NCBI GenBank assembly: GCA_010909165.1 | Contig: MU008165.1 | Location: forward strand, 558,001-622,000 | Length of the DNA: 64,000 bases | DNA from: Anthoceros angustus | Taxonomy: Eukaryota; Plantae; Anthocerotophyta | Direction of reading: 5' to 3' | Shown: positions 995 through 64,000 of the stretch, in pieces | How the letters are laid out: each line of letters opens with the position of its first letter | How positions within the stretch are numbered: the stretch's first letter is position 1 | The notes under the pieces: generated by a model | What the model was told of the DNA's origin: nothing | The model's database searches: none | Seen by the model: the letters and a program-made list of their open reading frames with translations, nothing else | Program-made: the position numbers and the translations under genes

Positions 995-1449
995 AGGCCC
1001 TGGACTTCGAGGCTTGCTTCTTAACCCACAATTGGCTGATTGAAGGCAGGCGGGCGGTAGCTCTCCGCTCTGCCATGGCTACCAGGATCACACTCCTTCG
1101 ATGACTCAAAGATCTTGGTGCGACATTACAGACTAAACGATCGTAGTCTTGAAGTACGTGGATGAAAGCTAAGATTCACTGATTCTGACTACAGCCGGGC
1201 GGAGCGAATGACATAGACCGTTGTCTTTGAGAGGACAAAGTGACAACCATACCCAAGAAGCAGCGACCCAGTTCATGCAGATTAGTGGAACATGATGGAA
1301 TCACATGAAAAATAAGCGTGCGTAAATTGCGTGCAATGTGCCTGCGATGCATCCGAAGACATCGTAGGCAGCCAGCCCTCGGCGCACATCCCCTCGGGTA
1401 TCTGTCCAGATGTAGCACAGATCCTTCATTGAGAAATACATGTTCAGCT

Positions 1450-3990: not shown

Positions 3991-4246
3991 AGTACCGCCT
4001 GTGGGAGATGCACCAGCTCATCGCACAAATCAGCTGGAACCAAGAATCATTCCAACGGTTCAAACAGCCGTTCTGGAAGTTGAAAGAAAGCTCTTTCTGG
4101 CAATGTCCGCAAGCATCCTCGATGCTGCTGCTCTTGAGTGGCAGCCCAAGAACGTAATCCGGCGTACTCTTCATCGTGATCAGTGGCGTCCGGTCGGGCC
4201 TGTTGTTTAGGGCATCTGCCATGGCAACCTTTCTGCTTTGACGCAC
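3977..4246 (-). pseudogene. Degenerate DYW-domain remnant downstream of the 1605-aa PPR ORF
   Basis: TPDYVLGLPLKSSSIEDACGHCQKELSF resembles the DYW segment (GYVPD..VL....EKEDALCGHSEKLA). It is out of frame with the upstream ORF and lacks the catalytic Glu and CxxC. Confidence 0.5.
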
Positions 4247-4252
4247 ATGATC

Positions 4253-28920: not shown

Positions 28921-29399
28921 TTTGCTGCGGGTGCAGTGAGGGGTGTTACTTTGCTTCGGGTGCAGTTAGGGGTGTTATTTTGCTAAGGGTGCCGAACCAC
29001 ATCCAAACTAGAAGTGCAATAAGCTGCACACAATTGTAACAAAAAGGCTTCAAAAATGCTATGACAAAAAAAAAGGCCTAAAAAATGTTATAAACTAAGT
29101 GACATAGGACCCCATATTCAAATCTACCTTGCCTACCTGCTATGGAAAGCATACGCACAGGTCTTTTCGGGAAAGGGCGAGACCATCATTTATTTCAATT
29201 CAATTGTAGCACACGCAGAAAATTAGGACAAGTTCCCAAAAACCCACATCCTTCAGCCTATGCATTTCAAAATCCATCGTTCATTCTCTAAAAAAAATCC
29301 ATCGTTCAGCCTTCCATAAGCACCACTATGCAACCCCAGCAGAATGCCAACAATGGCAGACTCCCTGCCTCCCGCCCTCGAGCAAGTGTATGTTCAAGA

Positions 29400-38625: not shown

Positions 38626-41600
38626 TGCTCTGTTGCTGGTTCTGTGTCGACTCCTAGAAAAACCCTGCGTGGCTGCAGTGTGGGGATGCAAGATGTTCAG
38701 AGGCAGGCAATGTCGGTGTATGGTGTAGCAGGAAATCACCGAGGCAAGTGGATCTGGCAGTCGTAAGGGTCTCTGAAATGTTGCAGCGTAGCGTAGCATA
38801 ACATTATGCAGTGTAGCATAACATTATGTTTGTTTTGGCATATCCTTGTTGACCTTTCTGGATGATGCAGTTTGCCAAGGATTGAAGACGACCTGTAGTC
38901 TGATGCATGGGGCAAACTTCGTACTGAAGGACGCCTTACTCAGGAATTTCATGCTGTGGATCTTTGGAGACGGGGAGGATTGTTTGCGTCCAGAGCTCGT
39001 CTGTGCCGTCTCCTGAAAGGGTGCATTGAGAAGAAGGATCTGGAACTGGGCACGCGAGTCCATGCCTTTTGTGTTGAATGTGGCGATGGGTCCAACTCGT
39101 TTCTGACAGTTCTGCTAATCCGGAGGTATGCATTGCATGGGAGTTTGTGGGAAGCAAACTAAGTGTTCAGCAAGCAACATGCACTTGATTCGTTTGTGTG
39201 GGCGTCGATTGCTTCGGCACATGTTGAGCTTGGGAAAGCTCAGCAGGTGCTGGAGCTGTACCAACAGGTGCGGCAGACAGCCATTAGGCCCAATGACTAC
39301 ACTATTGTGGCTGTGCTTAAAGCTTGTGCACTGCAGGATGGAAAGAATTGGACCGTCGCACCGGAGTTTGAATGTGTCATGCCCGACGCCAAGGAAATCA
39401 ATTCCACTGCAGCTGCTTCCAAGAGTGGTATAGGCGGTTGCCAAGTCTGCAAACGGCAACAGAGCCCAGCAGATCCAGATGTCGGCCTGGTAATTCCCTG
39501 GTTTTAGCAATTCAGGTTACAATGACATGCTAGAGGTTGCAGTGATTGAATATTTCGTGTTTGCTGGCAAATTTGCAAGAAGGCTGTTGGGGGAGGTGGT
39601 TGCTCATAGAAGTTGGAAATGTGTGCTCTGTTGCTGGTTCTGTGTCGACTCCTAGAAAAACCCTGCGTGGCTGCAGTGTGGGGATGCAAGATGTTCAGAG
39701 GCAGGCAATGTCGGTGTATGGTGTAGCAGGAAATCACCGAGGCAAGTGGATCTGGCAGTCGTAAGGGTCTCTGAAATGTTGCAGCGTAGCGTAGCATAAC
39801 ATTATGCATACTGTAGCATAACATTATGTTTGTTTTTGGCATATCCTTGTTGACCTTTCTGGATGATGCAGTTTGCCAAGGATTGAAGACGACCTGTAGT
39901 CTGATGCATGGGGCAAACTTCGTACTGAAGGACGCCTTACTCAGGAATTTCATGCTGTGGATCTTTGGAGACGGGGAGGATTGTTTGCGTCCAGAGCTCG
40001 TCTGTGCCGTCTCCTGAAAGGGTGCATTGAGAAGAAGGATCTGGAACTGGGCACGCGAGTCCATGCCTTTTGTGTTGAATGTGGCGATGGGTCCAACTCG
40101 TTTCTGACAGTTCTGCTAATCCGGAGGTATGCATTGCATGGGAGTTTGTGGGAAGCAAACTAAGTGTTCAGCAAGCAACATGCACTTGATTCGTTTGTGT
40201 GGGCGTCGATTGCTTCGGCACATGTTGAGCTTGGGAAAGCTCAGCAGGTGCTGGAGCTGTACCAACAGGTGCGGCAGACAGCCATTAGGCCCAATGACTA
40301 CACTATTGTGGCAGTGCTTCAAGGTTGTAGCAGCAGATCCGACCTGGCAATGGGCAAGCTAGTTCATGCTAATGTAGTTGTTTCAGGCTTGGAATCAGAT
40401 GTGTTTGTTGGGACTACCCTTGTGGACGTCCGCCAAATGTGGGAGCTTGGAGGATGCTCGGAAAGTATTTGATGCCATGCCAACAAAGACTTAAAGTACC
40501 TGGAGTTCTTTGATTGCTGGATATGCCCACCATGGACAAGGTGAGGAAGCTCTGCATCTCTTTTCCAGCATGGAACAGAAAGGCATGACTGCAGACAAAC
40601 TCACTTTTGTAGTTGTCCTGAACGCATATGTCAGTATTACTGCCCGTCAGGAGGGCACTCGGATCCATGCCCAAATTGTGGAAGCAGGACTGAATACAGA
40701 CATGTTTGTTGCAAGCTTGTTGACATGTATGTAAAGTGCTGAGGCCTGGTACATGCTCGCACAATCTTCGACGTTTTGCCTACCAAGGATGTGGTGATAT
40801 GGGGTGCAATGCTCGCAGGATATGCTCAGCATGGCCTTGGTGCAGAAGCGCTCGAACTTTATGCAGGCATGCCACAGTAAGATGCCAGACAACACTGTTG
40901 TAGTGGTTGGCATGCTGAAAGCATGGGGGCTATCAAGGAGGGAACGGAAATCCATTCTCGGATTCAAGAACGATGTCTTGATGCGAGTGCTCCATTTGAC
41001 ATGTATGTAAAGTGCTGAGGCCTGGTACATGCTCGCACAATCTTCGACGTTTTGCCTACCAAGGATGTGGTGATATGGGGTGCAATGCTCGCAGGATATG
41101 CTCAGCATGGCCTTGGTGCAGAAGCGCTCGAACTTTATGCAGGCATGCCACAGTAAGATGCCAGACAACACTGTTGTAGTGGTTGGCATGCTGAAAGCAT
41201 GGGGGCTATCAAGGAGGGAACGGAAATCCATTCTCGGATTCAAGAACGATGTCTTGATGCGAGTGCTCCATTTGACATGTATGCAAAGTGCGGGAGCCTG
41301 GCGAATGCTCGGAGTGTATTTAACAGTCTGGCCAACTGGAATGCTGTGACATGGAACGCTATGATTGCAGGATACGTTCAGGAAGGACTGGGCCAGGATG
41401 CGGTTGGCCTACATACAGACATGCAGCAGGATGGTGCTACAGTGGCCAGTGACAGCACGTTTGTGAGCATTTTGAAAGGCTGTGGCAGCCTGGGGGCTAA
41501 TTTGCAATGCAAGGAAATACATGCGCAGATCCGAGAAAGGGGGTTTAGGTAACCAGGATCACTGGGACCAGCCTGGTGGACGTGCGCAAAATGCAGGAGC

Positions 41601-42270
41601 TTGGTGGATGCTCGCAAGTTGTTTGACAGATGTCCGCCAGAATCAAGGGCACTTTGAATGCCATGATCGCTGTCTATGGCTAGCACAACAATGACTGCAA
41701 AGTGGGCATGCAGGGCTTCGAGGATCTGGCACAACATGGAGTGAAACGCGATGCTGCAACGTTCATGTCGTTGCTTGTTGCGTGCAGTCATGTGGGCTAT
41801 GTGGACGAGGGGCGGCAATACTGTATGAAGATGGTCGAAGAGCATGGCATCACCCAACTGCGGAACACTATCACTGCATGGTTGATCTCCTTGCCGTGGA
41901 GGTCACCTCGAGGACGCAGAGTCTCTGCTCCTGTCCACGCTCCAGTCCAAAGAGGACACCGTGGGTTGGACAGCGTTACTCAGCTCCAAGGAGCCTGAAT
42001 TTCCAGATGCGAGAGGACGAGGCCCATATGGATTTGGTCTCCGAGCCCATCACTGACAGGGAGAAGGAAGATGCCTTGTGTGGGCATGCTGAATCGCTGG
42101 CTGTTGCCTTTGGTCTCCTCAACACGGCTGAAGGCTCAACTCTGTTGCTGACCAAGGATCTGCGAATGTGCAACGACTGCGACAACGGCACTAAGATACT
42201 CTCCAGGCTTGAAAGACGAGAGATCGTTGTCAGTGATGCTCCCACCATGTGGCTTTTCTCCACATAGTCA
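38626..42270 (+). pseudogene. Pseudogenised duplicate of the DSR-type PPR-DYW:KP gene at 52.4-55.4 kb
   Basis: Collinear similarity to 52441-55355 with stops, frameshifts, deletions and two internal tandem duplications. The deaminase motif reads GHAESLA...CNDCD (His lost) and the terminal segment is deleted. Confidence 0.9.
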
Positions 42271-44441: not shown

Positions 44442-45305
44442 GAGTCTCAGTAGTACTCCTTATTCGTGTTTCGGTGTTTGTATGATCGGGCTTATGTCCA
44501 CCATTCTCTCCAGGGTTGCCTACCATTGCGGAGTAGAACTTTTCCTTCAGCAGGCAAGGCGCAAGTAGTTTTGAACCTGAACCCTGATAGCTTCTCGACA
44601 CGTGAAGGATGAGGAAGTAAGGATCACATCTGCCGGTGCGGGCTGGTATGCGTCGGTGTGTCCGTGTATAGCTTTTTGCCCTCGCCCATTTGTCATTCTG
44701 TGGTGGCTAGACAAAGCTCCTACTCAGCTGGCTCTAGTTGTTTTTACTGTTGGTGCATCCGTGTGTGGCCTCGATATTACTGGATGTTATCACTTTGCCT
44801 TGATTGCTGTATAAATTCTTTATTTGGGGACACTTCCCTGTTGTTTAATCGAGAAGCACTTGTCCAACTCCCACTTCGTCGTGACAACTGCCAGTGTTTG
44901 TCAAAAGCCTGCTGCTCTAGTGACCCATTCCTCTGATGGCCGTTGTCTGTACACGTGCATAGTATCAAGAGATTCGTGAAAGGTGTCTGCAGGATCGTCC
45001 ACCTTTCATCCGATCTGTATCAAAGCCACCAGCTACCCTAATTCTGAGGAGTCTTGCGTTGAGATCGCTTTTACAGACACAAGTGTGAGAATGCTGTATG
45101 AAGCCTGGAGTTGTTTTAGTTTCATCTGAACCATCGTTAGTACGAAGGCCAAGTCTGGATACTTAGCTGAAAAGGGCCTGTGGAGTACGTGGCCAGGTCC
45201 TTATCCCGATCCATCCTTTCACAGGCCTTACGCAAGCAAACTCATCCCTCAGAAAAAGGGAAATTCCCTGGCGTACCCACTTAACCACTGGCAAGTTCTC
45301 CCTTC

Positions 45306-48300
45306 TCATGGTCGACCCTTACAACTGCAACAACCATTTGCGAACCGATGCACACGGTACCCATCCCGTCCAACAATATCTCTTTGTTCAAGCCTTGACA
45401 TGATCTCCGTAGAACTGTGGCAGTCACTGCACATGCGTAGATTCTTCGTTACCACCAGAGGTGTCCCACTCGGAGTGTTCAACAGACCAAACGCTAGAGC
45501 TAGCTTCTCAGCATGCCCACAAAGGGCATCTTCTTTTTCCTTCTCACACAGTGGCTTCAGCACCAACTTCGTGTGAGGCACGTGGCCTCCTTCCTGCTTC
45601 AGACGTGCACTCGTGCTCTCCACCTTGCAAAATATCCTCTTCCTTTCTCCCACCAGAAATCTATGAACCTGCCGATTCACCTCAATGGTCGCCACTGCAG
45701 GTTTCTTGTTAGCTCCTGCTACTATTCTCTGTGTTTCAATCCTGTCTACATCGGTCCACCTACCTGCATCTGCATACATTGGCCATGAGCACATACGCAG
45801 ATGCCCTTTGAGGCTCCAGCCTAACAATGCTTTCAAAACACCACACCGCCCTCTCTATATCCCCGTGACTTTTGCAGGCATTCAACAAAGACGTCAAGCC
45901 CACAACATTACTTTGGCCCTCACATGATAATAGCATCTTCTTTTCCTTCTCACACAGTGGCTTCAGCACCAACTTCGTGTGAGGCACGTGGCCTCCTTCC
46001 TGCTTCAGACGTGCACTCGTGCTCTCCACCTTGCAAAATATCCTCTTCCTTTCGCCCACCACAAATCTATGAACCTGCCGATTCACCTCAATGGTCGCCA
46101 CTGCAGGTTTCTTATTAGCTCCTGCTACTATTCTCTGTGTTTCAATCCTGTCTACATCAGTCCACCGACCTGCATCTGCATACACGTTGGCCATGAGCAC
46201 ATACGCAGATGCCCTTTGAGGCTCCAGCCTAACAATGCTTTCAAAACACCACACCGCCCTCTCTATATCCCCGTGACTTTTGCAGGCATTCAACAAAGAC
46301 GTCAGGCCCACAACATTACTTTGGCCCTCACATGATAATAGCATCTTGCGTGCCTCATCTAAATGGCCAGCACGCCCAAGAAGATCCATTGCGGTTACAA
46401 TTTCAGCTGCGGCCTTGGGCGCCATGCCTCACAGCAACCTCCCTTGCCTCGCGCCTCGAATCGGTGATGCCTCGCCTGAAATTCTTGGCGGGTCAGTCTC
46501 CCAGGGTTCCTACCTCCTCAGCAACCGCGCCACCGCCCGTTGAGCCCTCCTCCTTCAGCGTCGCGGCTCGCGACCTCACTGGCGAGGGTCTGGGCTGCCC
46601 CTCCTCGCGATTGCGCCCTCATGCCCTTCAGCAGACCGCGGTATCTCCAGGCCCAGCTCCTCGACGTCCTCGCGCTCCAGCCGCCGCGTTGCGCCCGCTC
46701 CCACTCGGAGTGTTCAACAGACCAAACGCTAGAGCTAGCTTCTCAGCATGCCCACAAAGGGCATCTTCTTTTTCCTTCTCACACAGTGGCTTCAGCACCA
46801 ACTTCGTGTGAGGCACGTGGCCTCCTTCCTGCTTCAGACGTGCACTCGTGCTCTCCACCTTTTGCAAAATATCCTCTTTCCTTTCGCCCACCACAAATCT
46901 ATGAACCTGCCGATTCACCTCAATGGTCGCCACTGCAGGTTTCTTATTAGCTCCTGCTACTATTCTCTGTGTTTCAATCCTGTCTACATCAGTCCACCGA
47001 CCTGCATCTGCATACACGTTGGCCATGAGCACATACGCAGATGCCCTTTGAGGCTCCAGCCTAACAATGCTTTCAAAACACCACACCGCCCTCTCTATAT
47101 CCCCGTGACTTTTGCAGGCATTCAACAAAGACGTCAGGCCCACAACATTACTTTGGCCCTCACATGATAATAGCATCTTGCGTGCCTCATCTAAATGGCC
47201 AGCACGCCCAATGGCCATTGGGCGGTTACAATTTCAGCTGCGGCCTTGGGCGCCATGCCTCTACAGCAACCTCCCTTGCCTCGCGCCTCGAATCGGTGAT
47301 GCCTCGCCTCGAAATTCTTGGCGGGGTCAGTCTCCCAGGGTTCCTACCTCCTCAGCAACCGCGCCACCGCCCGTTGAGCCCTCCTCCTTCAGCGTCGCGG
47401 CTCGCGACCTCACTGGCGAGGGTTCGGGGCTGCCCCTCCTCGCGATTGCGCCCTCATGCCCTTCAGCAGACCGCGGTATTCTCCAGGCCCAGCTCCTCGA
47501 CGTCCTCGCGCTCCAGCCGCCGTTGCGCTCCGCTCCTCACTCTCGCTTCAACCTCCGTTGCGCGTTTGCGACCCTCCTGAACTAGTCCCTCATGACTGCA
47601 TGCTACTAGAAGGCAAGTAAAAGTAGCATCATCAGGCTGAACACCGGCAACTAACATCTCCTCAAAACAAGCTAGTGCCTTGTGACCTTCATCACTAGCA
47701 CCATACCCAGCAATCAGCGCTGTCCATGTCACCACATCCTTGTGGCCATGCTGTCAAAAACCTGGCGTGCATCTTCCAGTTCGCCACATTTCGCATACAT
47801 GTCCACCAGGCAGTTGCCCACCACTATGTCATCCAGCAGTCCTCTTTTGACAATCTGTGAGTGCAATTGCATGCCCTTCTGTAAAGCACCAGTGCTTGCA
47901 CAAGCCTTCAGAAGGCAAGAAAAGGTGACATGGTCAGCCAAAATGAGGCCCGCCTCCTCCATTTGTCCATACACAACAAGCGCCTCTGGGCTGAGTCTTT
48001 GCTCTGCATACCCAGCAATCAGGGCATTCCATGTCACCACATCCTTTGTGGCCATGCTGTCAAAAACCTGGCGTGCATCTCCCAGTTCAGCCTCCTCCAT
48101 TTGTCCATACACAACAAGCGCCTCTTTGCCGAGTCCTTGCTGTGCATACCCATCTATCAGCGCTGTCCAAGTCACCACATCCTTTGTGGCCATGCTGTCA
48201 AAAACCTGGCGTGCATTCTCCAGTTCGCCACATTTCGCATACATGTCCACCAGGCAGTTGCCCACCACAACGTCATCCAGCAGTCCTCTTTCGACAATCT

Positions 48301-50343
48301 GTGAGTGCAGTTGTATGCCCTTCTGTAAGGCACCTGTGCTTCCACAGGCCTTCAGAAGGGAAGAAAAAGTAACATGGTCAGCCAAAATGAGCCCCGCCTC
48401 CTCCATTTGTCCATACACAACAAGTGCCTCATGTCCGAGCCCTTGCTGGGAATACCCATCAATCAGCACCGTCCATGTCACCACATCCTTTGTCGCCATG
48501 CTGTCAAAAACCTGGCGTGCCTTCTCCAGTTCGCCACATTTTGCATACATGTCCACCAGGCAGTTGCCCACCACAACGTCATCCAGCAGTCCTCTTTCGA
48601 CAATCTGTGAATGCAATTGTATGCCCTTCTGTAAGGCACCAGTGCTTGCACAGGCCTTCAGAAGGCAAGAAAAAAAGTAACATGGTTAGCCAAAATGAGG
48701 CCCTCCTGCTCCATTTGTCCATACACAACAAGCGCCTCTTGGCTGAGCCCTTGCTGTGCATACCAGCAATCAGGGCATTCCATGTCACCACATCCTTCGT
48801 GGCCATGCTATGAAAAACCTGGCGTGCATCTTTCATGTTGCCACATTTCGCATACATGTCCACCAGGCAGTTTCCAACAAACAAGTTATTAGGAATGCCA
48901 CTCTGCACCACATCACTGTGCACTTTTCTGCCAGATCCCAAGTCGGCGGCAAATGCACAAGCTTGAAGGGCCGCTACAAAGACGTGAGCATCCGCCTTCA
49001 CTCCTGACCTACGCATCTCATGGTACAGCTGTACGGCCTCATTAGCTTTCCCATGCTTAGCGTATGCCGAGATGATGGAAGACCACATGAAGACATCCGG
49101 TTTGGCCACTCTGGTGAGCACATCCATGGCCTCCTCGAGCCTACCTGCACATGCATACATACGTAAAATATGGTCCCAAGTGTGCATTCGACTCGTACCC
49201 AAGTTGGACACTGAGGTCCTGAACTCGTCGCCCCAAAACCAAATCCCTCTTAGCTGTACACAGTTTTAGTACAATGTAAAACAGAGACTGAGAAACCGCA
49301 GAGTCTGCGTGCGCCAGAGATTCCAGGGCTCCAACGGCCTCAGCAAGCTTCCCCTGCTGACATAACAAGCTCACGGTTCCAGCCGTTACCACGCCCAGTT
49401 CCGATCCTGCAGGCCTCCCAGGTTCAGGATTATCTGGAGAGCTGGACTCGGAAGCACAGGCACCATGGCCCATCTGCATATCCAAGGAAATGAGCTGCTC
49501 ATCAACCCAAACTGGCTTAAACATGTTGTTTAACCACAGCACCTCGCCGGACCCCTTACGCCGGAAGTCGGGCAAACGGGAGCTCTTCTTGTCTCGTCTG
49601 TTTATCCCACCACAGGGTAGGGTCCAGAAAAAATTGTCGCCACAAGTGCTCCTGCTCCTGGCGGCGACCATCGTTGGAAATCCCGTCCCCACCCACACAT
49701 TTTCTCGGATGTGGAAGTGCTGGGCTGCTTACACTGCTGCACCTGGAACCCATTTCCGAATCTGTACGCCTCTCAGGTTCAGGATTATCCGGAAAGCTCG
49801 TCTTGGAAGGAGAGGCACCATGACCCATCGGCATATCCAAGGAAACCAGCTGCCCATCAACCCAAGCTGGTTTCAACATGTTGTTTAACCACAGGACCTC
49901 GCCGGACCCTTTACGCCGGAAGTCAGGCCAATGCGAGCTCTTCTTATCTCGTCTGTTGTCCCACCACATGGTAGGATCCAGAAAAAATTGTTGCCACAAG
50001 GGCTCCTGCTCCTGGCCACGACCATCGCTGGAAAACCCGCCCCCACCCAGACACTCTCTCGGAAGTGGAAGCGCCGGGTTCCTTACAGTGCTGCACCTGG
50101 AGGCTTCGTTTGCCAGGGGTTGACTCCCGAAGATGAGGTGAGCGGGAGCTCCTGGTAGAATCCCTCTACACATACCAATTTGTTGGGTCCACGACGGGTC
50201 CGGTTGACACACTGTGGCCATCGTTCAGGGACCGTTGTTGGAAGACGAGTCCAACAACAGACTATGCCAGAATGCCCAGGTACTGAGCATGACCACACCA
50301 TGCGAGCTGGCTCCGATGCCGTAGCATAATAAGCAACATGCAT
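45306..50343 (-). pseudogene. PDF-PDF-PLS-PPR-E-DYW:KP (GRP-type) locus, fragmented as assembled; candidate U-to-C editing factor
   Basis: Two PDF motifs, PPR pieces (48579-49211, 47729-48616, 47463-47735), a GC-rich insert and a triplicated E/DYW tail. The complete end at 45306 reads KKPAVATIEV...CGHAEKLALAFGLLNTP...KNLRMCSDCH...HRFANGCCSCKGRP. Several frameshifts are in homopolymers. Confidence 0.85.
49490..49999 (-). other. Two tandem OSB-type PDF motifs (354-bp period) in the PPR leader
   Basis: Copy 1 reads LWQQFFLDPTMWWDNRRDKKSSHWPDFRRKGSGEVLWLNNMLKPAWV. Copy 2 reads LWRQFFLDPTLWWD/NRRDKKSSRLPDFRRKGSGEVLWLNNMFKPVWV, with one extra A in copy 2. Confidence 0.85.
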
Positions 50344-50959
50344 ATAGTTTCCTTGGCCGCTGTGCGGATTTTGCCGTCCCGATGTCAGTGGTATTTCGGG
50401 TGCAGCAGGATGGAAAAGTTGACGGAGTTGCAGGATGCTGAAGACTTGTCAGGACGCACCGGGAGCAGCGAGGAGGACGGGAGTGGAGACGGGAAAATAA
50501 GCAGGTGGTGGTAGACCAGTCCGAATTGGGATAAGCCTACCCACCTAGAGTGAAGGAAGAAAAAGGCTCACGGCCGGGCGCCGTGAACGGTCATAGCGGC
50601 CAATCCCCCCTCATCTCTGCTATGTTCTCCCCTGCCCATGTCGACTGTTGTCTGGCACTGCCATGTTCTCGACCTAGGAGTATGGTGATTCGTGACACCA
50701 GTCCTCTTGCAACTTCCGGAATTGCTTGCGGCCGCTCAGGACTGTCGAGCTTAATTTGCCAAGCCGGCCGCCGCGTCCAAAGTGGAGTTGGCAGCTTAGT
50801 AGTTCTACTCTAATCTGCTGCGCTGCTGTGGCTGTGAGGAGGGCAGAAAAGTGGGAGTGAAGAATTGTTCATACTAGGCTGTTTGAGCGCAGAGAGTTTG
50901 GAGCGAGAGATGGATCAATCTAAAAGAAAGTGGCAATTTTCAAGGCGGACTAGTCGTAG

Positions 50960-51810: not shown

Positions 51811-52610
51811 TGGAACTGAGCATGCTTCAGGGATGCCCATGCGTTTCCAACCCTGCGTTCATAGTCTCAGCGCAACAGGAAAGGGTTTAGGGTTTAAGCG
51901 TGTGCACTGTGGGAGAGCAGCAGCGGGATGAAGAGAATTGGACGTTCGCATCGGAGTTTGGATGTGTCATGCCTGACGCCAAGGAAATCAATCCCCTTCA
52001 GCTTCTTCCAGGAGTGGTACAGGCGGTTGTCAAGTCTGCAAACGGGAATAGAGCCCAGATTTCGGCCTGGTAATTCCCTGGTTTTAGCAATTCAGGTTAC
52101 ATTGACTTGCTGGAGATTGCAGTGATAAAATATTTCGTGTTTGCTGGCAGGTGATCGAAATTTGCAGGAAGGCTTGTCGGGGGAGGTGGTTGCTCATACC
52201 TCGCTTTGGTGGGATAGCAAGTGGAGGGAAAAGGTGAAACGTGTGCTCTGTTGCTGGTTCTGTATTGGTGTTGGAAATTCTCATTGATGATCTGGACTTA
52301 GGAGGGATGTTTTGCTTTCTTAGAAGCACATGCTGATGATTGCTCATCACAGCAGAGCAATCTGGACCTCATTCAAAAAGCCAATAGCGAGGCCTTGGGG
52401 CTCGACTCCTGGAAAAACACTGCGTGGCTGAAGTGTGGGTATGGGAGATCTTCGGAGGCAGACAAGGCTGGTGTATGGTGTAGGTGGAAATCACTGAGGC
52501 AAGTGGATCTGGCAGTCGTAAGGGTCTCTGAGATGTTGATAACATTATGCAGTGTAGCATAACATGATGTTTGTTTGGTATCTCCTTGTTGACCTTCTGG
52601 ATGATGCAGT

Positions 52611-55355
52611 TTGCCAAGGATTGAAGATGACCTGCAGTCCGATGCAAGGTGGCAACTTTGTACTGAAGGACGCCTTACTGAGGCATTTCATGCAGTGGAT
52701 CTTGGGAGACGGGAAGGATTGTTTGTGTCCAGAGCTATTCTGTGCCGTCTCTTGAAAGGGTGCTTTGAGAAGAAGGACCTAGAACTGGGCAGGCGAGTCC
52801 ATGCTCTTTGTGTGGAATGTGGCTATGGGTCCAACTCGTTTCTGGCAGTTCTGCTAATCCGGATGTATGCCTTGCATGGGAGTTTGCGGGAAGCAAATGA
52901 AGTGTTCAGCAAGCAACATGCACCTGATGCGTTTGTGTGGGCGTCCATTATTTCAGCACACGCTGAGCTTGGGCAAGCTCAGCAGGCCCTGGAGCTGTAT
53001 CAACAGATGCGGCAGACAGCCATTAGGCCCAATGACTACACTATTGTGGCTGTGCTTAAAGCTTGTATCACCAGATCCGACCTGGCAATGGGGAAGCTAG
53101 TTCATGCTGACGTAGTTGTCTCAGGCTTGGAATCAAATGTATTTGTTGGGACTACCCTTGTAGACATGTACGCCAAATGTAGGAACTTGGAGGATGCTCG
53201 GAGAGTGTTTGATGCCATGCCAAGAAAGAATGTAATTACCTGGAGTTCTTTGATTGCTGGATATGCCCACCATGGAAAAGGTGAGGAAGCCCTTCATCTC
53301 TTTTCTTACATGCAACAGAAAGGCATGACTGCAGACAAAATCACTTTTGTAGCCGTCCTGAAAGCATGTGGCAGTATTGCAGCCCTTCAGGAGGGCACCC
53401 GGATCCATGCCCAAATTGTGGAAGCAGGACTGGAAACAGACATGTTTGTTGCAAGCTCTCTTGTCGACATGTATGTAAAGTGTGGAGACCTGGTACATGC
53501 TCGCATGATCTTCGATGTTTTGCCTACCAAGGATGTGGTGATATGGGGTGCAATGCTCGCAGGATATGCTCAGCATGGCCTTGGTGCAGAAGTGCTCGAA
53601 CTTTATGCAACCATGCCACAAGATGGTAAGATGCTAGACAACACTGTTGTATTGGTTAGCATCCTGAAAGCATGTGGCACTATGGGGGCCATCCAGGAGG
53701 GAACGAGAATCCATGCTCGGATTCGAGAACGATTTGTTGAAGCAGATGTTTTCCTCGGGACTGCTCTAGTTGACATGTATGCAAAGTGCGGGAGCCTGGA
53801 GAACGCTCGCAGTGTATTCAACAGTCTGGCCAACCGGAATGCTGTGACATGGAACGCTATGATTGCAGGATACGTCCAGGAAGGCTTGGGCCAGGATGCA
53901 CTTAGCCTATATACAGACATGCAGCAGGATGGTGCGACAGTGGCCAGTGACAGCACGTTTGTCAGCATTTTGAAAGCCTGTGGCAGCCTGGGGGCTATCT
54001 TGCAAGGCAAGGAAATACATGCGCAGGTCCAAGAAAGAGGGGTTCAGGTAAACGGGATCATTGGGACCAGCCTGGTGGACATGTACGCTAAATGTGGGAG
54101 CTTGGTGGATGCTCGCAAGGTGTTTGACAGATGTCCTACCAAAACCAAAGGCACTTGGAATGCCATGATCTCTGGATATACTCAGCACGGGCGTGAGCAG
54201 GATGCCCTTGATCTTTATGCGAGCATGCAGCAGCAGAGTGTCACCCCGGACGAAATTACCTTTGCCACCATTTTGAAGGCATGTGGCAGCATAGGAGCTA
54301 TTCAGGAGGGTAAGCGTGTGCATGCTCACATCCTTGAAAGTGGGTTGAAGGTCGACCCGTTTATTGGGAGTGCTCTGGTTGACATGCACACCAAATTCGG
54401 AAGCCTGGAGGATGCACACAAATTGTTCAATAGCCTGTCACGGCAAGATGTGGTGACCTGGAATGCTTTGATCAACGGCTATGGCCAGCACAATGACTGC
54501 AAAATGGCCATGCAGTGCTTCGAGGATATGGCACAACACGGAGTGAAGCCCGATGCTGCAACGTTCATTTCATTGCTTGTTGCCTGCAGTCATGTGGGCT
54601 ATGTGGACGAGGGGCGGCAATACTTTATGAAGATGGTTGAAGAGCATGGCATCACTCCAACTGTGGAACATTATCACTGCATGGTTGATCTCCTTGGCCG
54701 TGCAGGTCACCTCGATGACGCAGAGGCTCTGCTCCAGTCCATGCCCTTCAAACAGGACACCGTGGGTTGGGTAGCTTTACTCAGCGCCTGCAAGGCTCAT
54801 GACGACATCTCCCGTGGCAGGAGGTGCTTTGACCGTCTTGTGGAACTGGAACCCGCACATGGTGCTGGATACGTGCTCATGGTTGACATGTATGAAAGTG
54901 CAGGCAAGCATGAGGACGCTCGCCACATCCAACGTTTGAGAGCATCTGCTGGTGCTGTGAAAAAACCTGCGAGAGCCACCATCGAGGTCGACAACAAGGT
55001 GCATGAGTTCATCGTCGGAGAAGAGCGGGATGACATCTCTTCGAAACTAAGGAGCCTGAATGTCCAATTGCGGGAGGATGAGACCCACATGGATTTGCTC
55101 TCCGAGCCAATCACTGACAGGGAGAAAGAAGATGCCTTGTGTGGGCATGCTGAAAAGCTGGCTGTTGCCTTTGGTCTCCTCAACACACCTGAAGGTTCAA
55201 CTCTGCTGCTGACCAAGGATCTGCGAATGTGCAACGACTGCCACAACGGCACCAAGATACTCTCCAGGCTTGAAAGACGAGAGATCATTGTCAGAGATGC
55301 TCACCGGGTCCATCACTTCAAGGCTGGGTTATGCTCCTGCGGGGATTCTCGTTGA
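52611..55355 (+). CDS. PLS-class PPR-E-DYW:KP protein, DRH-like subtype ending in DSR (main exon, 914 open codons); candidate U-to-C editing factor
   Basis: PLS repeats, an E region, then KKPARATIEV...CGHAEKLAVAFGLLNTPEG...KDLRMCNDCH...RDAHRVHHFKAGLCSCGDSR. The ORF has no ATG at its 5' end. It follows an acceptor (tgcag, 52609); a candidate upstream exon at 52441-52517 contains an in-frame TGA. Confidence 0.88.
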   Translation: MPRIEDDLQSDARWQLCTEGRLTEAFHAVDLGRREGLFVSRAILCRLLKGCFEKKDLELGRRVHALCVECGYGSNSFLAVLLIRMYALHGSLREANEVFSKQHAPDAFVWASIISAHAELGQAQQALELYQQMRQTAIRPNDYTIVAVLKACITRSDLAMGKLVHADVVVSGLESNVFVGTTLVDMYAKCRNLEDARRVFDAMPRKNVITWSSLIAGYAHHGKGEEALHLFSYMQQKGMTADKITFVAVLKACGSIAALQEGTRIHAQIVEAGLETDMFVASSLVDMYVKCGDLVHARMIFDVLPTKDVVIWGAMLAGYAQHGLGAEVLELYATMPQDGKMLDNTVVLVSILKACGTMGAIQEGTRIHARIRERFVEADVFLGTALVDMYAKCGSLENARSVFNSLANRNAVTWNAMIAGYVQEGLGQDALSLYTDMQQDGATVASDSTFVSILKACGSLGAILQGKEIHAQVQERGVQVNGIIGTSLVDMYAKCGSLVDARKVFDRCPTKTKGTWNAMISGYTQHGREQDALDLYASMQQQSVTPDEITFATILKACGSIGAIQEGKRVHAHILESGLKVDPFIGSALVDMHTKFGSLEDAHKLFNSLSRQDVVTWNALINGYGQHNDCKMAMQCFEDMAQHGVKPDAATFISLLVACSHVGYVDEGRQYFMKMVEEHGITPTVEHYHCMVDLLGRAGHLDDAEALLQSMPFKQDTVGWVALLSACKAHDDISRGRRCFDRLVELEPAHGAGYVLMVDMYESAGKHEDARHIQRLRASAGAVKKPARATIEVDNKVHEFIVGEERDDISSKLRSLNVQLREDETHMDLLSEPITDREKEDALCGHAEKLAVAFGLLNTPEGSTLLLTKDLRMCNDCHNGTKILSRLERREIIVRDAHRVHHFKAGLCSCGDSR

Positions 55356-57680: not shown

Positions 57681-59220
57681 GGTGGCACAGCGATGCTCGC
57701 TTCTCCTATTCTAGTCTTTTGGCAGCTCTTGTTATTGTTCTGTTCATGCATTTCACACATTTCTTCTTCTGCCTTCAGGTTGTGTGATGTACGCAGCGTA
57801 GCGTCATTGTGAAGCTGTTGCACTGGAGCTGGAAGATGCCGACGTTCTGACTCGAACCGTTCTTTACGGCCCTGTCAGTCCTCGCTTTGTAACTCCTCGA
57901 CTCTGGCTTTGATTGGCTTGATCGTCTGGTCCAACTTTGCCTTGGCAACGTCTCCGAAGCAAAGTGGAGAAATTTGGACTTAGAATCAGGGGAAGCCTAT
58001 TGTGGACTTCCGGGGGAGCCTATTCTGGACTTCCGGGAGAAGCCTGGGCCTGTGGTGCCATCCCTGCAGCGCCTTCCGTTTGTGCAGTCATATGTTTTTG
58101 AAATGAACGAAGTTTAATATAAGTCATTCGAAATTCATGTATCCTCTTTGTGTCTTCCGTTTGATGTGTCCACTTATTCCGTTTGGTTTTGTTTCGGAGC
58201 GTTCCATGAAGTGGTTACGCAGCCGAGTTATTAGAGCGTGAACTCTCGGGCTGCATGCACACAGCTGCCCGGCGTGACTCTTCCGTAACCTACATCAGTT
58301 CTGCCATCGCCAAATTGCAACGACCTAGCTAAAACGAGGTTACTCAACTCACGGCAGGCGACACGCAGTTCGCGACAGGTGGAGGAGCTCTGAAGTGGGA
58401 CGAACGATTTGATTGACGAGCTTCGTCTGCTCACGAGTATGTGTAGTCCCCCCACCTACGAGCTCCTGTTCTTGTCCTCCCAAGCAGGGTTTGCAATAAA
58501 GCTTACAAGCATATGGTGTGATTGGAAGATGAAATGTCGAATTCAGACAATGACTGCATCTCGGTGTATATATGTATAATTGTCAAAGGTGAGCCTTCCC
58601 TGTTCACCTAGATCTTTCAGTTAGGGAATAATGTGCATCGATCCTAGAGTGGCCGCCGGTAGTAATGAGGGCCTGCCACTTTGGACAACCGTCCATGACT
58701 GGGCTCAGCGTTGTTCCTAAGATGCTTTGTTGCGGAGGCAGCATATTGTATTCCTGTATGTTGTATGATGACCCAGGCTTAGTGTAGGTCCTTTCGGCAT
58801 GATTCTTACATTTCGTATTCCTGTATACTTGAGGCTCGCTGTGTTGTGGTGCCTGACTCATGGAGGGTTGTGGCTTGCTCGCCTGACGAGATATCAGAGG
58901 CTGACCATCACTGTTCCTTCAAGTGTGCTTATACAGACTTTTGGAAATCAAAAGACTGCATTGCTTGGAACTCCCGTAAGCCACCTGACCTGCAGGGACT
59001 GACGTGTGATAATCAGTATTGACCAGGGCCCGTCATCCAGGAACAGAAATGTGTGGGTACTCATACCTTGCTGAGCACGAACTGTGATAAGTTTTGTTCT
59101 CTGGGTAGGGCACTGAGGTAATTACAAATATCGTTGCCCACAGGAGCATTCTTAAACATAAGTTTAATCATTTAACAATTCTAGACATGACCCACGGCTT
59201 GACGTTCATGTGTGCCACTT

Positions 59221-62200
59221 TCATGCTTCACTCTTGAAATGCCTCTCACGACACAGAAATCTGTGCACCAAACCGTCCATGTCTGTCCACCAGCTTTCAC
59301 CTGGCTGCTTCCATGCCCTTATTTTGATTCTTCTAGCCTGCATCTCCTCGGCCTGCATCCACATTTGGGCACCGGTATATATGTTCCACATCAACACATA
59401 TGCTGCCGCATCATTCTTGTCTAGTTTCACTGCCTGGTCAAATGCATGACGTCCCACTTTCACATTGCTCCATTTCCGACAAGCACCCAAGAGGGTGTGC
59501 CAGACTGTAGCATCAGGGATTACAGGCATTCTCCTTACCAAAGCTAGTGCCTCATCCAGTTGGCCTGCACGGCCCAGGAGATCCACCATGCATGTGTAGT
59601 GCTCCACTGTGGGAGTGATACCATACTGGACAGTCATAGCCTCAAAATACTCTAGCCCCTTGGCTACTAGACCAGTATGACTACATACCATCAGTACACT
59701 GAGGAACGTTATGCCATCTGGCCGTATGCCATCTTCCCTCATCCTGAGAACCAACTTAAAGACCTCTTCACTGTCTCCTTGGTGGCTGTATCCGGCAATC
59801 AGTGCATTCCAGGCGACAAGGTTTCTTTCGGGCAATGCCTCAAACACCTGCTGGGCATCAACAATGCTCCCGGACTTGCTGTACATGTTTATCAAACTGC
59901 CAGCCACAAACAGATCACCTTGAAGCTGTTGTAATTCAATCTGTTCATGTAGCTGCCTTCCCAGATGCAAAGCTGCCGCATTTGCACACGCCTGCAGAAG
60001 ACACACAAATGTCATGGAATTGGGTACACCAGTGCCTTCCTCTTTCATGGCACTGTAGAGACGAAGGGCTTCCTGGCCCATGCCCTGCTGAGAATACCCT
60101 GCTATCATGGCATTCCATGTCACCACATCTTTTTCGAGGAGTCCGTCAAACACTACCCGAGCATCCTTCAGGCTGCCACACTTTGCATACATCTTTAACA
60201 AACTGTTAACAACAAACACATCGGCTTGATGTCCTCGTCCTGTAATCTGCACGTGAAGCTGCTTCCCCATCTCCAGAGCTGGAGAGCCCACACTTGCACA
60301 TGCCTGCAGGAGGGACACAAATGTCACAGAATTGGGTGAGGCCATGCCATCTTCCTGCATAGCACTGTAAAGGCGCAGGGCCTCGAAGCTTTTGCCCTGC
60401 TGGGCATAGCCTGTTATCATCGAGTTCCATGTCACAACATCTTTTTGTCCCAGTCCGTCAAACACTCTCTGCGCATCCTCTAGGCTGCCACACTTTGCGT
60501 ACATGTTTACCAAACTGTTCACCACAAATGCATCAGGTTCGTGTCCTCGGTCGCTGAGTTGTGCATGAAGCTGCTTCCCCTTTTCCAAAGCTGTGGTGCC
60601 CAGACTTGCACATGCCTGCAAGAGGCACAGGAAAGTTATGGAATTGGGTACAGCAGTGCCATCTTCTTGCATAACACTGTAGAGATGAAGGGCATCCTCA
60701 CCCATGCCCTGCTGGGAGAAGCCTGCTATCATGGCATTCCATGTCACCACATCTTTCACATCAAGCCCGTCAAACACTCTTTGGGCCTCTTCCAAGCTGC
60801 CACACTTTGCATACATATTCACCAAGCTGCTGGCCACGAAAACATCAGCTTCAAGTCCTTGTTCTGTAATTTGCATATGAAGCTGCTTCCCCTTCTCCAG
60901 ACCTCGGGTGCCAACACTTGCACATGCCTGCAGGAGCCACACAAACGTCACTGAATCTGGTACAGCACTCCCTTGTCCTTGCATCGCACTGTACAGATGA
61001 AGGGCTTCCTGGACCAAGCCCTGCTGGGAATACCCCGCTATCAAGGCATTCCAGGTCATTACATCTTTTTGACCAAGTCCGTCAAACACTTGCTGAGCGT
61101 CTGCCAAGCTGCCACACTTCATGTACATCTTCATTAAATTGTTGGCTACGAACTCGTCAGCTTGGTGTCCATGTTGTGTAATTTGCCTATGAAGCTCCTT
61201 CCCGTTTTCCAATGCCAAGGTTCCCACCCTTGCACAAGCCTGCAGGAGACACGAAAATGTCACAGAATCGGGTATAGCCAAGCCATCTTCTTGCATAGCA
61301 CTGTACAGACTAAGGGCTTCCTGACCCATGCCCTGCTGGGAGTAGGCACCTATCATGGTATTCCACGTCACCACATCCTTTTCAGCTTGTCCTTGAAACA
61401 CCTCCTGAGCATCCTCTATGGAACCACACTTTGCATACATGTTCATCAAACTGCTTCCTACAAGTACATCACCTCGAAGCCCTTGTTCGCTAATTTGTGC
61501 ATGAAGCTGCTTCCCCTTCTCCAATGCTGGGTTGCCCACGCTTGCACATGCCTGGAGGAGGCAGACAAATGTCACAGAGTTGGGAGCAACAATGTTTTCT
61601 TCTTCCATAGCAGTGTACAGGCTAAGGGCTTCATGCCCCATGCCCAGCTGGGAATACCCAGCTATCAGGGAACTCCAGGTCACCACATCCTTTTTCGCAA
61701 GTCCATCGAACACCCTCTGAGCATCCTCCAAGCAGCCACACTTTGTATACATGTTTACCAAACTGTTGCCAACAAACACATCAGCTTGAAATCCTCGTTC
61801 TCTAATTTGTGCGTGAAGCTGTCTCCCGGTCTCCAGAGCTGGAGTCCCCACACTTGCACACGCCTGCAGGAGGCACACAAAGGTTGCAGGCTTTGGTAAA
61901 GTCATTCCTTTTTCTTCCATAACACAGTAGAGATGGAGGGCCTCCTGCCCCATGCCCTGCTGTGAATATCCTGCTATCATTGCAGACCACGTTACCGCAT
62001 CCTTTTCACCAAGTCGGTGAAACACCCTGTGAGCATCTTCCAAGCTGCCGCACTTTGCATACATGTCTATTAAAGTGTTGGCTACAAACACATCACCTTC
62101 AAGCCCTTGCTCTCTAAGTTGTGCATGAAGCTGCTTCCCCTTCTCCAGAGCCGGGATGCCCACACTTGCACATGCCTGCAGAAGGCAGACAAAGGTCACA

Positions 62201-64000
62201 GCATCAGCTACAGCAAGACTACCTTCTTGCATAGCACTATAAAGACGAAGGGCTTCCAGACCCATGCCCTGCTGGGAATATCCTGCAATTAGAGCAATCC
62301 ATGTTGCTACATCTTTTTGACCAAGTCCGTCAAACACCCTCTGAGCATCCTCGAGACACACACACTTCGCATACATCTTCACCAAACTGCTGGCTAGAAA
62401 CACATCGCCTTCAAGCCCTTGTTCTCTAATTTGTGCATGAAGCTGCTTACCCTTATCCAAAGCTAGGGTGCCTACACTTGCACATGCCTGCAGGAGGCAC
62501 GCAATTGTCACAGAATTGGGAGTTACTATGCCTTCTTCTTGCATACTGTTGTACAGAGACAGGGCTTCCTGCCCCATCCCCAGCTGGGCATACCCTGCAA
62601 TCATGGAAGTCCATGTCACCACATTCTTCTGACCAAGTCCATCAAACACACTCCGGGCATCCTCTAGACTGCCACACTTTGCAAACATGTTCACCAAACT
62701 GTTGGCTACAAATACATCAGCTTGATGCCCTCGTTCTCTAATTTGCACAAGTAGCTGCTTTCCGGTCTCCAAAGCAGGGGTGCCCACACTTGCACATGCC
62801 TGCAGAAGGCACACAAACGTCACAGAATCGGGTATAGCCATGTCATCTTCTTGCATAGCTCTGTACAGAGCAAGGGCTGCCTGCCCCATACCCTGCTGGG
62901 CATATCCTGCTATCATCGCACTCCACGTGACTACGTCTTTTTGAGCAAGTCCGTCGAACACTCTCTGAGCATCCCCCAGACTCCCACACTTTGCATACAT
63001 ATTCACCAAACTATTGGCTACAGACACATCAGCTTGATGTCCTCGTTCCCTAATTTGTTCATGGAGCTGCTTCCCCTTCCCCAAAGCTGGGGTGCCCACC
63101 CGTGCACATGCTTGCAGGAGGCAGACAAAAGTCACAGAGTTGGGGACAGCAATCCCTTCTTCTTGCATCACACTGTAGAGCCGAAGGGCTTCCAGCCCCA
63201 TCCCCTGCTGAGAGTATCCAGATATCATGGCAGTCCAGGTCACCACATCCTTTTCCCCAAGTCCGTCAAAAACTCTCTGAGCGTCTTCCAAGCTGCCGCA
63301 CTTCGCATACATGTCCACCAAGCAATTACATACGAACAAATCAGGCTCACCCCCACTGGCCAGCACGTCAGCATGCACCTGCTGCCCACCTCTCAGGTCC
63401 CTCCCCCTTGCACAGGCCTGAAGGGCTGCCACGAACACATGGCCATCTGGCTTCACACGGCACCTGCGCATCCGCTGATACAGCTGCACGGCCTGCTTGT
63501 CTTGTCCATGTCTAACATGCGCAGAGATTATGGAAGACCAGATGAAGGCATCTGGTTCATCAACCATGGTGAACACATCCATCGCGTCTTGCAACCTGCC
63601 ACACGAAGCATACATTCGCAGAATGTGGTTGCACAGGAACGTGTCCGACTGATACCCCTTGTCCACCGTCAAACCATGCACCCGACGACCCAGAACAAGA
63701 TCCTTCTTCAACACACATTTCTTCAGTACAGTATAAAACAGAGACTTGGGAACACAGAAGTCTGTTCGCACCAAAACTTCCAGAGCCTCAACAGCCTCCG
63801 TGAGCAGGCCCTCATGACATAGCTTGCTCACAGTTTCAGCCATCATACTCCTATCGTATCCTGCAGGCCTTCGATTGTCCCGACCGTCGGGCAAGCTCAA
63901 TTTGGATTTAGAGGCCTCACGACCCATCTCCATATCCAAAGCAGCAAGCTTCGAATCCACCCAGGCTGGCTTGTAGAAGTGGTGCAGCCAGAGCACCTCA
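59221..64000 (-). CDS. Very long PLS-class PPR, E1-E2 plus truncated DYW:WW (over 1591 aa; 5' end beyond the window), with a PDF-motif half at the edge
   Basis: Open ORF with 13 PLS units, ending WKQPGESWWTDMDGLVHRFLCRERHFKSEA*. It begins at the edge with EVLWLHHFYKPAWVDSKL. Confidence 0.95.
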   Translation of the reverse strand, partial: EVLWLHHFYKPAWVDSKLAALDMEMGREASKSKLSLPDGRDNRRPAGYDRSMMAETVSKLCHEGLLTEAVEALEVLVRTDFCVPKSLFYTVLKKCVLKKDLVLGRRVHGLTVDKGYQSDTFLCNHILRMYASCGRLQDAMDVFTMVDEPDAFIWSSIISAHVRHGQDKQAVQLYQRMRRCRVKPDGHVFVAALQACARGRDLRGGQQVHADVLASGGEPDLFVCNCLVDMYAKCGSLEDAQRVFDGLGEKDVVTWTAMISGYSQQGMGLEALRLYSVMQEEGIAVPNSVTFVCLLQACARVGTPALGKGKQLHEQIRERGHQADVSVANSLVNMYAKCGSLGDAQRVFDGLAQKDVVTWSAMIAGYAQQGMGQAALALYRAMQEDDMAIPDSVTFVCLLQACASVGTPALETGKQLLVQIRERGHQADVFVANSLVNMFAKCGSLEDARSVFDGLGQKNVVTWTSMIAGYAQLGMGQEALSLYNSMQEEGIVTPNSVTIACLLQACASVGTLALDKGKQLHAQIREQGLEGDVFLASSLVKMYAKCVCLEDAQRVFDGLGQKDVATWIALIAGYSQQGMGLEALRLYSAMQEGSLAVADAVTFVCLLQACASVGIPALEKGKQLHAQLREQGLEGDVFVANTLIDMYAKCGSLEDAHRVFHRLGEKDAVTWSAMIAGYSQQGMGQEALHLYCVMEEKGMTLPKPATFVCLLQACASVGTPALETGRQLHAQIRERGFQADVFVGNSLVNMYTKCGCLEDAQRVFDGLAKKDVVTWSSLIAGYSQLGMGHEALSLYTAMEEENIVAPNSVTFVCLLQACASVGNPALEKGKQLHAQISEQGLRGDVLVGSSLMNMYAKCGSIEDAQEVFQGQAEKDVVTWNTMIGAYSQQGMGQEALSLYSAMQEDGLAIPDSVTFSCLLQACARVGTLALENGKELHRQITQHGHQADEFVANNLMKMYMKCGSLADAQQVFDGLGQKDVMTWNALIAGYSQQGLVQEALHLYSAMQGQGSAVPDSVTFVWLLQACASVGTRGLEKGKQLHMQITEQGLEADVFVASSLVNMYAKCGSLEEAQRVFDGLDVKDVVTWNAMIAGFSQQGMGEDALHLYSVMQEDGTAVPNSITFLCLLQACASLGTTALEKGKQLHAQLSDRGHEPDAFVVNSLVNMYAKCGSLEDAQRVFDGLGQKDVVTWNSMITGYAQQGKSFEALRLYSAMQEDGMASPNSVTFVSLLQACASVGSPALEMGKQLHVQITGRGHQADVFVVNSLLKMYAKCGSLKDARVVFDGLLEKDVVTWNAMIAGYSQQGMGQEALRLYSAMKEEGTGVPNSMTFVCLLQACANAAALHLGRQLHEQIELQQLQGDLFVAGSLINMYSKSGSIVDAQQVFEALPERNLVAWNALIAGYSHQGDSEEVFKLVLRMREDGIRPDGITFLSVLMVCSHTGLVAKGLEYFEAMTVQYGITPTVEHYTCMVDLLGRAGQLDEALALVRRMPVIPDATVWHTLLGACRKWSNVKVGRHAFDQAVKLDKNDAAAYVLMWNIYTGAQMWMQAEEMQARRIKIRAWKQPGESWWTDMDGLVHRFLCRERHFKSEA

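Follow-up and report, generated by a model that had tools for sequence, protein, structure and literature searches.

A decayed PPR-DYW:KP gene with a duplicated OSB-type PDF leader in Anthoceros angustus and intact PDF-PPR fusions in seedless plants

Editing factors of the PLS class of pentatricopeptide repeat (PPR) proteins are usually pictured as a targeting peptide followed by a PPR array, E motifs, and a DYW domain. Here, a 64,000-nucleotide stretch of Anthoceros angustus DNA (GenBank assembly GCA_010909165.1, contig MU008165.1, forward-strand positions 558,001 to 622,000; referred to as the window, with its first letter as position 1) was analyzed around two repeats that lie ahead of a gene of this type. 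An earlier note, made from the sequence alone, had read these repeats as PDF motifs of organellar single-stranded DNA-binding (OSB) proteins fused to a candidate U-to-C editing factor. According to our analysis, the region is very probably the two-PDF leader of a hornwort-type PLS-PPR-E-DYW:KP(GRP) gene, a pseudogene copy of an old architecture in which the PDF domain probably serves as an accessory grip. This conserved N-terminal domain, which is predicted to be folded and appears to be borrowed from organellar single-stranded DNA (ssDNA)-binding proteins, would be a part missing from the usual picture of these editors.

In OSB proteins, the PDF motif is about 50 amino acids long and occurs in one to three C-terminal copies; in OSB1, it is enough on its own to bind ssDNA (PMC6963530, PMC4166229). 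In the window, the PDF units were found upstream of a PLS-PPR array and E/DYW:KP segments, all on the minus strand (Table 1). The two copies were spaced 354 to 355 bp from start to start, a spacing that the repeat search also gave, and the DNA of the two units was 91% identical in the unit alignment. The proposed arrangement of two PDF-like copies at a distance of 354 bp, both upstream of the PPR array and sharing its strand, was thus confirmed.

The first of the two frames that encode these units is a 221-codon open reading frame (ORF; 49556..50221, minus strand). From its ATG at 50221, it encodes a possible presequence of about 70 residues, then copy 1 (LWQQFFLDPTMWWDNRRDKKSSHWPDFRRKGSGEVLWLNNMLKPAWV) and the opening of copy 2 (LWRQFFLDPTLWWD), after which the frame is lost. 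The rest of copy 2 (NRRDKKSSRLPDFRRKGSGEVLWLNNMFKPVWV) was encoded in a different frame, by a 185-codon ORF (49141..49698) that runs on into the first PPR helices. In the DNA alignment, a single 1-nt indel separated the two 354-bp units, with GAT-A-AAC in copy 2 corresponding to GAC-AAC in copy 1. The extra coding-strand A, which is part of the T run at 49601-49603 on the plus strand, produces a +1 frameshift between WWD and NRR. The motif string that had been given for both copies is therefore intact in copy 1, whereas in copy 2 it is readable only across this frameshift. The interval first assigned to the pair (49490-49999) takes in all of copy 2 and most of copy 1. On the plus strand, ORFs that overlap the locus, among them 49490-49888, were also considered but matched no family and were rejected as antisense shadows.

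Between the two PDF units, the ratio of nonsynonymous to synonymous differences (pN/pS) was 0.22 in the motif core and 0.6 to 0.8 in the linkers. The lower ratio in the core suggests former purifying selection on both copies, before the gene was broken.

Pfam has no model for the PDF motif, and a Pfam search of the ORFs gave no match to it even at an E value of 1; a profile was therefore built from OSB proteins. When the 221-amino-acid ORF was used as a phmmer query against 1.84 billion representative proteins, 491 matches were obtained at an E value of ≤1e-3 and 107 at ≤1e-10, and the domain architecture was read on the best 150. Of these 150 proteins, 53 had the OSB architecture, in which the PDF match follows an SSB-like domain toward the C terminus; another 15 were PPR proteins with an N-terminal PDF match. 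Cluster names among the matches included a Populus "protein OSB1, mitochondrial-like" and a Euphorbia "organellar single-stranded DNA binding protein 3." The OSB-only PDF profile, a hidden Markov model (HMM), was made from 113 motifs of the 53 SSB-positive proteins, with the Populus OSB1-like protein as the seed, and was run against all six translated frames of the 64,000-nucleotide window. It matched copy 1 with a domain E value of 1e-21 and the two halves of copy 2 with E values of 2e-4 and 6.8e-13. A partial PDF motif at the window edge (63940-63999) gave an E value of 0.012.

In an alignment of 71 PDF motifs, the window copy kept all of the invariant columns (D, R, K, D, and F) as well as the nearly invariant ones, and the conserved columns were mostly Trp, Phe, Arg, and Lys. 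The column pattern common to OSB and window PDFs was W..F..P..WWDNR..K...PDF.HK..E.LW...P.WV. An AlphaFold model generated from this alignment, with a predicted local distance difference test score (pLDDT) of 85, consisted of a helix, short strands, and a second helix. When the model was compared with Swiss-Prot by Foldseek, only the PDF regions of AtOSB1-4 were matched, with template modeling (TM) scores by query of 0.71 to 0.80 and root mean square deviations of 0.7 to 1.2 Å, both sides of the comparison being predictions. On this profile and predicted-fold evidence, the window motifs are genuine homologues of the OSB PDF motif, as the earlier note had proposed. The HMM check by which that note would have had the homology refuted thus came out in its favor. 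In a tree of the 71 motifs, which was unresolved given its 66 columns, the PPR-linked motifs, which may or may not have had a single origin, grouped together (4 changes versus 16.9 in shuffles). When the PDF region of the Selaginella protein P0075 was used in a word-indexed search, no sequence other than the query came back.

A separate observation concerns the copy number of the motif. In a set of proteins (P0001, P0002, P0007, P0009, P0019, and P0064), some contained 9 to 13 PDF motifs in tandem, in part of the cases together with an SSB domain, and a kinesin-annotated protein of Coptis chinensis contained three. The range of the PDF motif would thus be wider than the classical OSBs, unless the many-copy and kinesin cases are annotation fusions.

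In the 15 fusion proteins found among the best 150 of the 491 phmmer matches, the PDF motif was located at positions 1 to 290 and matched the OSB-only profile with E values of about 1e-19 to 1e-26 each. PDF-PPR proteins were obtained from the lycophytes Selaginella moellendorffii (XP_024517303.1) and Diphasiastrum complanatum (KAJ7517631.1, KAJ7570437.1, and KAJ7231026.1), the ferns Adiantum capillus-veneris (KAI5076972.1 and KAI5061374.1), Ceratopteris richardii (KAH7429238.1), and Pteridium aquilinum (a transcript model), the peat moss Sphagnum compactum (CAM6033764.1), and Logan-derived sequences (P0088, P0200, P0267, and P0003). The public proteins were annotated only as PPR or hypothetical. 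The fusion closest to the window gene was the Logan-derived P0088, from a hornwort-like sample (locus L001), in which an uninterrupted 753-codon ORF on a 9.1-kb contig encodes 77 presequence-like residues, one PDF, a PLS array, E motifs, and a DYW:KP domain ending in GRP. P0200 likewise ends in DYW:KP-GRP. Intact fusions of the hornwort-like sample had GRP and DRH tails.

As a second sample, the 118 PLS-PPR proteins that matched P0088 best were taken, and 32 of them, both canonical DYW and DYW-less forms included, had an N-terminal PDF. These carriers comprised 27 Diphasiastrum proteins, 1 from Sphagnum fallax, 2 metagenome-derived DYW proteins, 1 protein with a GRP tail, and 1 with a DRH tail. 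No PDF was present in the Ginkgo or Cryptomeria proteins among the 118 matches, and the Swiss-Prot fold search with the PDF model returned no Arabidopsis PPR protein with the domain. Judged from the sequences of both samples, the PDF-PPR architecture is real, ancient, and widespread, and it is intact in hornwort-like, peat-moss, lycophyte, and fern sequences.

Designer DYW:KP proteins of the GRP subgroup (KP2/KP3) carried out U-to-C editing in Escherichia coli (PMC9478123), and the earlier note had described the fusion on a candidate U-to-C editor. A special tie of the fusion to such editors was not supported. Among the first 15 fusions, a KP-type DYW domain was found only in P0088. The Sphagnum compactum fusion had a canonical tail (...CSCRDYW), many of the 27 Diphasiastrum PDF carriers had a PG box and a CGDYW tail, and the fern, Selaginella, and several Diphasiastrum fusions ended at the E motifs without a deaminase. 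Because the PDF is mostly attached to proteins with a canonical DYW domain, predicted to be of the C-to-U type, or to PLS proteins without DYW, the fusion is, as far as these domain assignments go, not specific to U-to-C editors.

In the window itself, the gene downstream of the PDF units is heavily decayed. When the intact homologues P0088, P0200, and P0267 were compared with the locus by tblastn, they mapped on 45309-50221 in at least six pieces with alternating frames, and identity over the array and E region was 37 to 72%. At least four frame changes were located in the PPR array, near 49170-49290, 48762, 48680, and 47741. The array is followed by about 330 bp without homology, then by E1/E2/DYW sequence up to LNTPSGS, a repeat of that unit, and the last DYW segment. 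The unit, which is present in triplicate, is about 830 bp long and combines the E2/DYW:KP segment with the roughly 330 bp of unrelated sequence, so that the DYW domain is broken after LNTPSGS. In the self-comparison, 46761-47542 matched 45933-46706 at 97% and 46699-47179 matched 45464-45939 at 98%. The unrelated sequence did not occur again in the window outside the local tandem duplication. As a transposon or intron it was rejected, since it is confined to this duplication and replaces coding sequence. The tail of the locus was of the GRP-type DYW:KP, as had been read before, with a KPAxA box replacing the PG box, an HxE...CxxCH site, and a terminal GRP in the last segment.

Consequently, no single open frame for the whole fused protein was found; it is interrupted by at least five frame changes and by the triplicated E2/DYW segment. 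With frameshifts in PDF-2 and the PPR array, and with the E/DYW triplication, the locus as assembled is a pseudogene that is unable to make the fused protein, and the working fused editor that had been envisaged at this locus could not be produced from it.

These lesions could also be read as assembly or consensus errors in a working gene that makes a two-PDF PPR-DYW:KP-GRP protein. The PDF-2 frameshift sits in a short homopolymer run, and variants with one base fewer at 49601 were found in contigs of runs X13, X7, and X9, although these may be paralogues or come from other species. The past purifying selection in the motif core would also agree with a functional gene, as would contigs of the putative RNA run X13 that exactly match 47164-47608 and 50136-50400. 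However, at least five independent frame changes and a triplication of about 830 bp stand against such errors. The assembly is not frameshift-prone in general, since two further PPR genes of the window read without interruption for 914 and 1592 codons. Moreover, the DNA contigs of run X1, the best-matching run, showed no variant without the extra base at 49601, and X13 contained a 0.25 share of the sampled words of the broken locus versus 0.70 for 63300-63999, which belongs to the intact paralogue. A working gene is therefore very unlikely. It would be more extreme still to regard the PDF units as a fragment of a separate OSB-like gene that merely lies upstream of the PPR gene, and we consider this exceedingly improbable. 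Such a reading could draw on the shift of frame from PDF-1 to PDF-2 and on the missing continuous ORF, but a single ORF spans the C-terminal half of PDF-2 together with the first PPR helices, the intact homologues and the window paralogue are single ORFs, and no SSB or OB-fold was found in the ORFs of the locus or encoded nearby, PPR repeats following the PDFs instead. The motifs are thus part of the PPR gene, in agreement with the earlier note, and by its domain content the window gene has one module in common with OSBs without being one of them.

The intact members consist of a presequence, one to three PDF domains, and a PLS-PPR array to which E and DYW domains may or may not be attached, and in them the PDF is most likely an accessory, sequence-unspecific grip on single-stranded nucleic acid. 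The homology, predicted fold, architecture, breadth, and past selection are supported by the results described above, whereas this binding activity and its substrate are inferred. On RNA, the N-terminal repeats of a PPR tract face the 5' side, and because of this a PDF ahead of the tract would be placed upstream of the recognized RNA sequence. There, it would increase the affinity for RNA on the upstream side of the editing site or keep this RNA open, or it would hold the factor on nucleoid ssDNA. The columns rich in Trp, Phe, Arg, and Lys fit the stacking and charge contacts that a predicted single-strand grip would make.

Several points weigh against this reading of the region. The PDF fold had no solved relative in our searches (none by Foldseek, a best Z score of 2.8 by VIA-align, and no sequence profile below an E value of 0.49). 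The pN/pS estimate in the core is based on just 17 substitutions. The pseudogene call comes from one assembly, and tens of thousands of short contigs from paralogues obscured the read evidence over 45300-50400. The absence from seed plants was observed in a small sample, namely, Ginkgo and Cryptomeria within the 118 matches and the Arabidopsis models in Swiss-Prot. Finally, OSB1 and OSB2 are reported to prefer ssDNA over double-stranded DNA or RNA (PMC4166229), which makes a role on RNA a guess.

This preference, together with the sufficiency of the OSB1 PDF for ssDNA binding (PMC6963530, PMC4166229), would instead suit a leader that tethers the editor to the ssDNA of the nucleoid or of the transcription bubble for co-transcriptional editing, as the earlier note had suggested along with a possible action on R-loops. 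The PPR-linked PDFs keep every conserved OSB residue and reach 1e-24 on the OSB-only profile, as this would lead one to expect. However, the PDF module abuts an RNA-binding tract, for which an extra RNA contact is the simplest use, and a leader of one to three copies is unlike the tetrameric, abundant, DNA-coating OSBs. Such tethering is therefore possible but rather unlikely. The leader might also work without nucleic acid binding, as a module for protein-protein contact, assembly, or import and sorting, for example, by oligomerization or by recruiting a trans-acting DYW deaminase. OSB2 is tetrameric (PMC6963530), a presequence-like N terminus always precedes the leader, and most fern, Selaginella, and many Diphasiastrum fusions, ending at the E motifs, would need a partner. 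Against this, the conserved Trp, Phe, Arg, and Lys columns are typical of single-strand nucleic acid-binding surfaces, and the sole tested activity of the PDF motif is ssDNA binding, which makes a role without nucleic acid binding unlikely.

The accessory grip thus remains our preferred function for the leader, and it can be extended. The PDF leader may be a built-in helper of PLS-PPR editors in seedless plants, a single-strand clamp whose task stand-alone helpers such as MORF/RIP took over in seed plants. Such a clamp would raise affinity, or it would prevent folding of the target RNA on the 5' side or, during transcription, of the non-template DNA strand. A helper takeover, if true, would account for fusions in hornwort-like, moss, lycophyte, and fern sequences and for none among the sampled Ginkgo, Cryptomeria, and Arabidopsis PPR proteins. 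We regard this extension as speculative and quite doubtful.

As for its surroundings, the locus belongs to a dense cluster of at least 10 PLS-PPR genes or gene fragments on both strands of the window (Table 1). In the separate paralogue at the window edge, the frame opens with the final 20 residues of a PDF motif, ends directly behind KQPGESWW, and lacks a deaminase core; by these sequence features the paralogue is a PDF-led gene that is not KP-type. Decayed and frameshifted PDF-leader remnants (...SWLSKPAWLDEQLV... and ...FYKRAWVDAQL...) were seen upstream of other PPR genes, at 29380-29560 (plus strand) and 899-943 (minus strand), and show the PDF leader in several states of decay. The plus strand also has a 914-codon open PPR-E-DYW:KP frame at 52611-55355, ending in ...CSCGDSR. 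No in-frame ATG occurred in this frame before about residue 85 and no recognizable PDF upstream of it; the 5' end may have suffered damage or be located in a different exon.

Table 1. Features of the PDF-PPR locus and of the other PPR genes in the window
Feature	Position	Strand	Description or evidence
PDF motif copy 1	49841..50011, core 49886-49984	minus	Intact, in frame; tblastn self match, OSB-only HMM, AlphaFold model
PDF motif copy 2	49486..49657	minus	+1 frameshift after WWD; DNA alignment, translations, HMM on both halves
Tandem duplication, 354-bp unit (PDF + linker)	49426..50133	minus	Repeat search, unit alignment
PLS-type PPR array	47541..49400	minus	Three-frame translation; tblastn of P0088, P0200, and P0267 in alternating frames
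E2/DYW:KP-N-terminal segment, partly overlapping tandem triplication	45464..47545	minus	Self-comparison, tblastn
Last DYW:KP segment	45309..45779	minus	KKPAVATIEV box, HAEKLA...CSDCH zinc site, C-terminal ...CSCKGRP, then stop
Separate intact paralogue, 1592-codon open frame	59224..63999	minus	PDF end (cut by window edge), long PLS array, E motifs
PLS-PPR cluster pieces	1-8900, 29700-31650, 38900-42240, 45300-50220, 52600-55350, 59200-64000	both	

In the openly readable literature, a scope outside which the original OSB paper and the two main DYW:KP papers lie, the PDF motif came up in five papers, all on subjects other than PPR proteins, and a 2026 kingdom-wide survey of editing-factor domain fusions mentioned neither PDF nor OSB. 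The PDF-PPR architecture is thus apparently undescribed so far, with a prior mention being possible. It extends the range of the PDF motif beyond OSB proteins, and the leader is also found on hornwort U-to-C candidates. In plants without MORF-type helpers, it should provide a testable handle on how editing factors find and hold their substrates, and in engineered PPR editors the PDF could serve as an optional affinity module. The window locus itself, a decayed copy, adds little to this; it shows that the PDF can be duplicated in tandem on PPR genes, with a core that appears to have been selected before the gene was broken.

Among known systems, MORF/RIP, ORRM, and OZ proteins, whose fusions are surveyed in PMC13386178, are similar in that they are extra nucleic acid- or protein-binding parts that aid PLS-PPR editors and are sometimes fused to them. 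The GRP-subgroup DYW:KP factors of hornworts (Gerke et al. 2020, as cited in PMC9478123) share with the window gene the PLS array, the E motifs, a KPAxA box, an HxE...CxxCH site, and the terminal GRP; an N-terminal PDF goes unmentioned in the descriptions available to us, and the window copy differs in being frameshifted and rearranged. The intact PDF-PPR proteins have the same short presequence, one to three PDFs, and PLS-PPR array in that order, but unlike the window locus they have open frames, mostly with a canonical DYW domain or none. The closest relatives of the leader are the PDFs of Arabidopsis OSB1-4 (Zaegel et al. 2006, as relayed in PMC6963530 and PMC4166229), which are likewise about 50 to 60 residues long, agree in all conserved columns and in the predicted helix-strands-helix fold, and occur in one to three tandem copies. 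OSBs, however, have an N-terminal SSB-like OB-fold and C-terminal PDFs and act in organellar DNA maintenance, whereas the window gene has no OB-fold, carries its PDFs at the N terminus, and has the body of a PLS-PPR RNA-editing factor.

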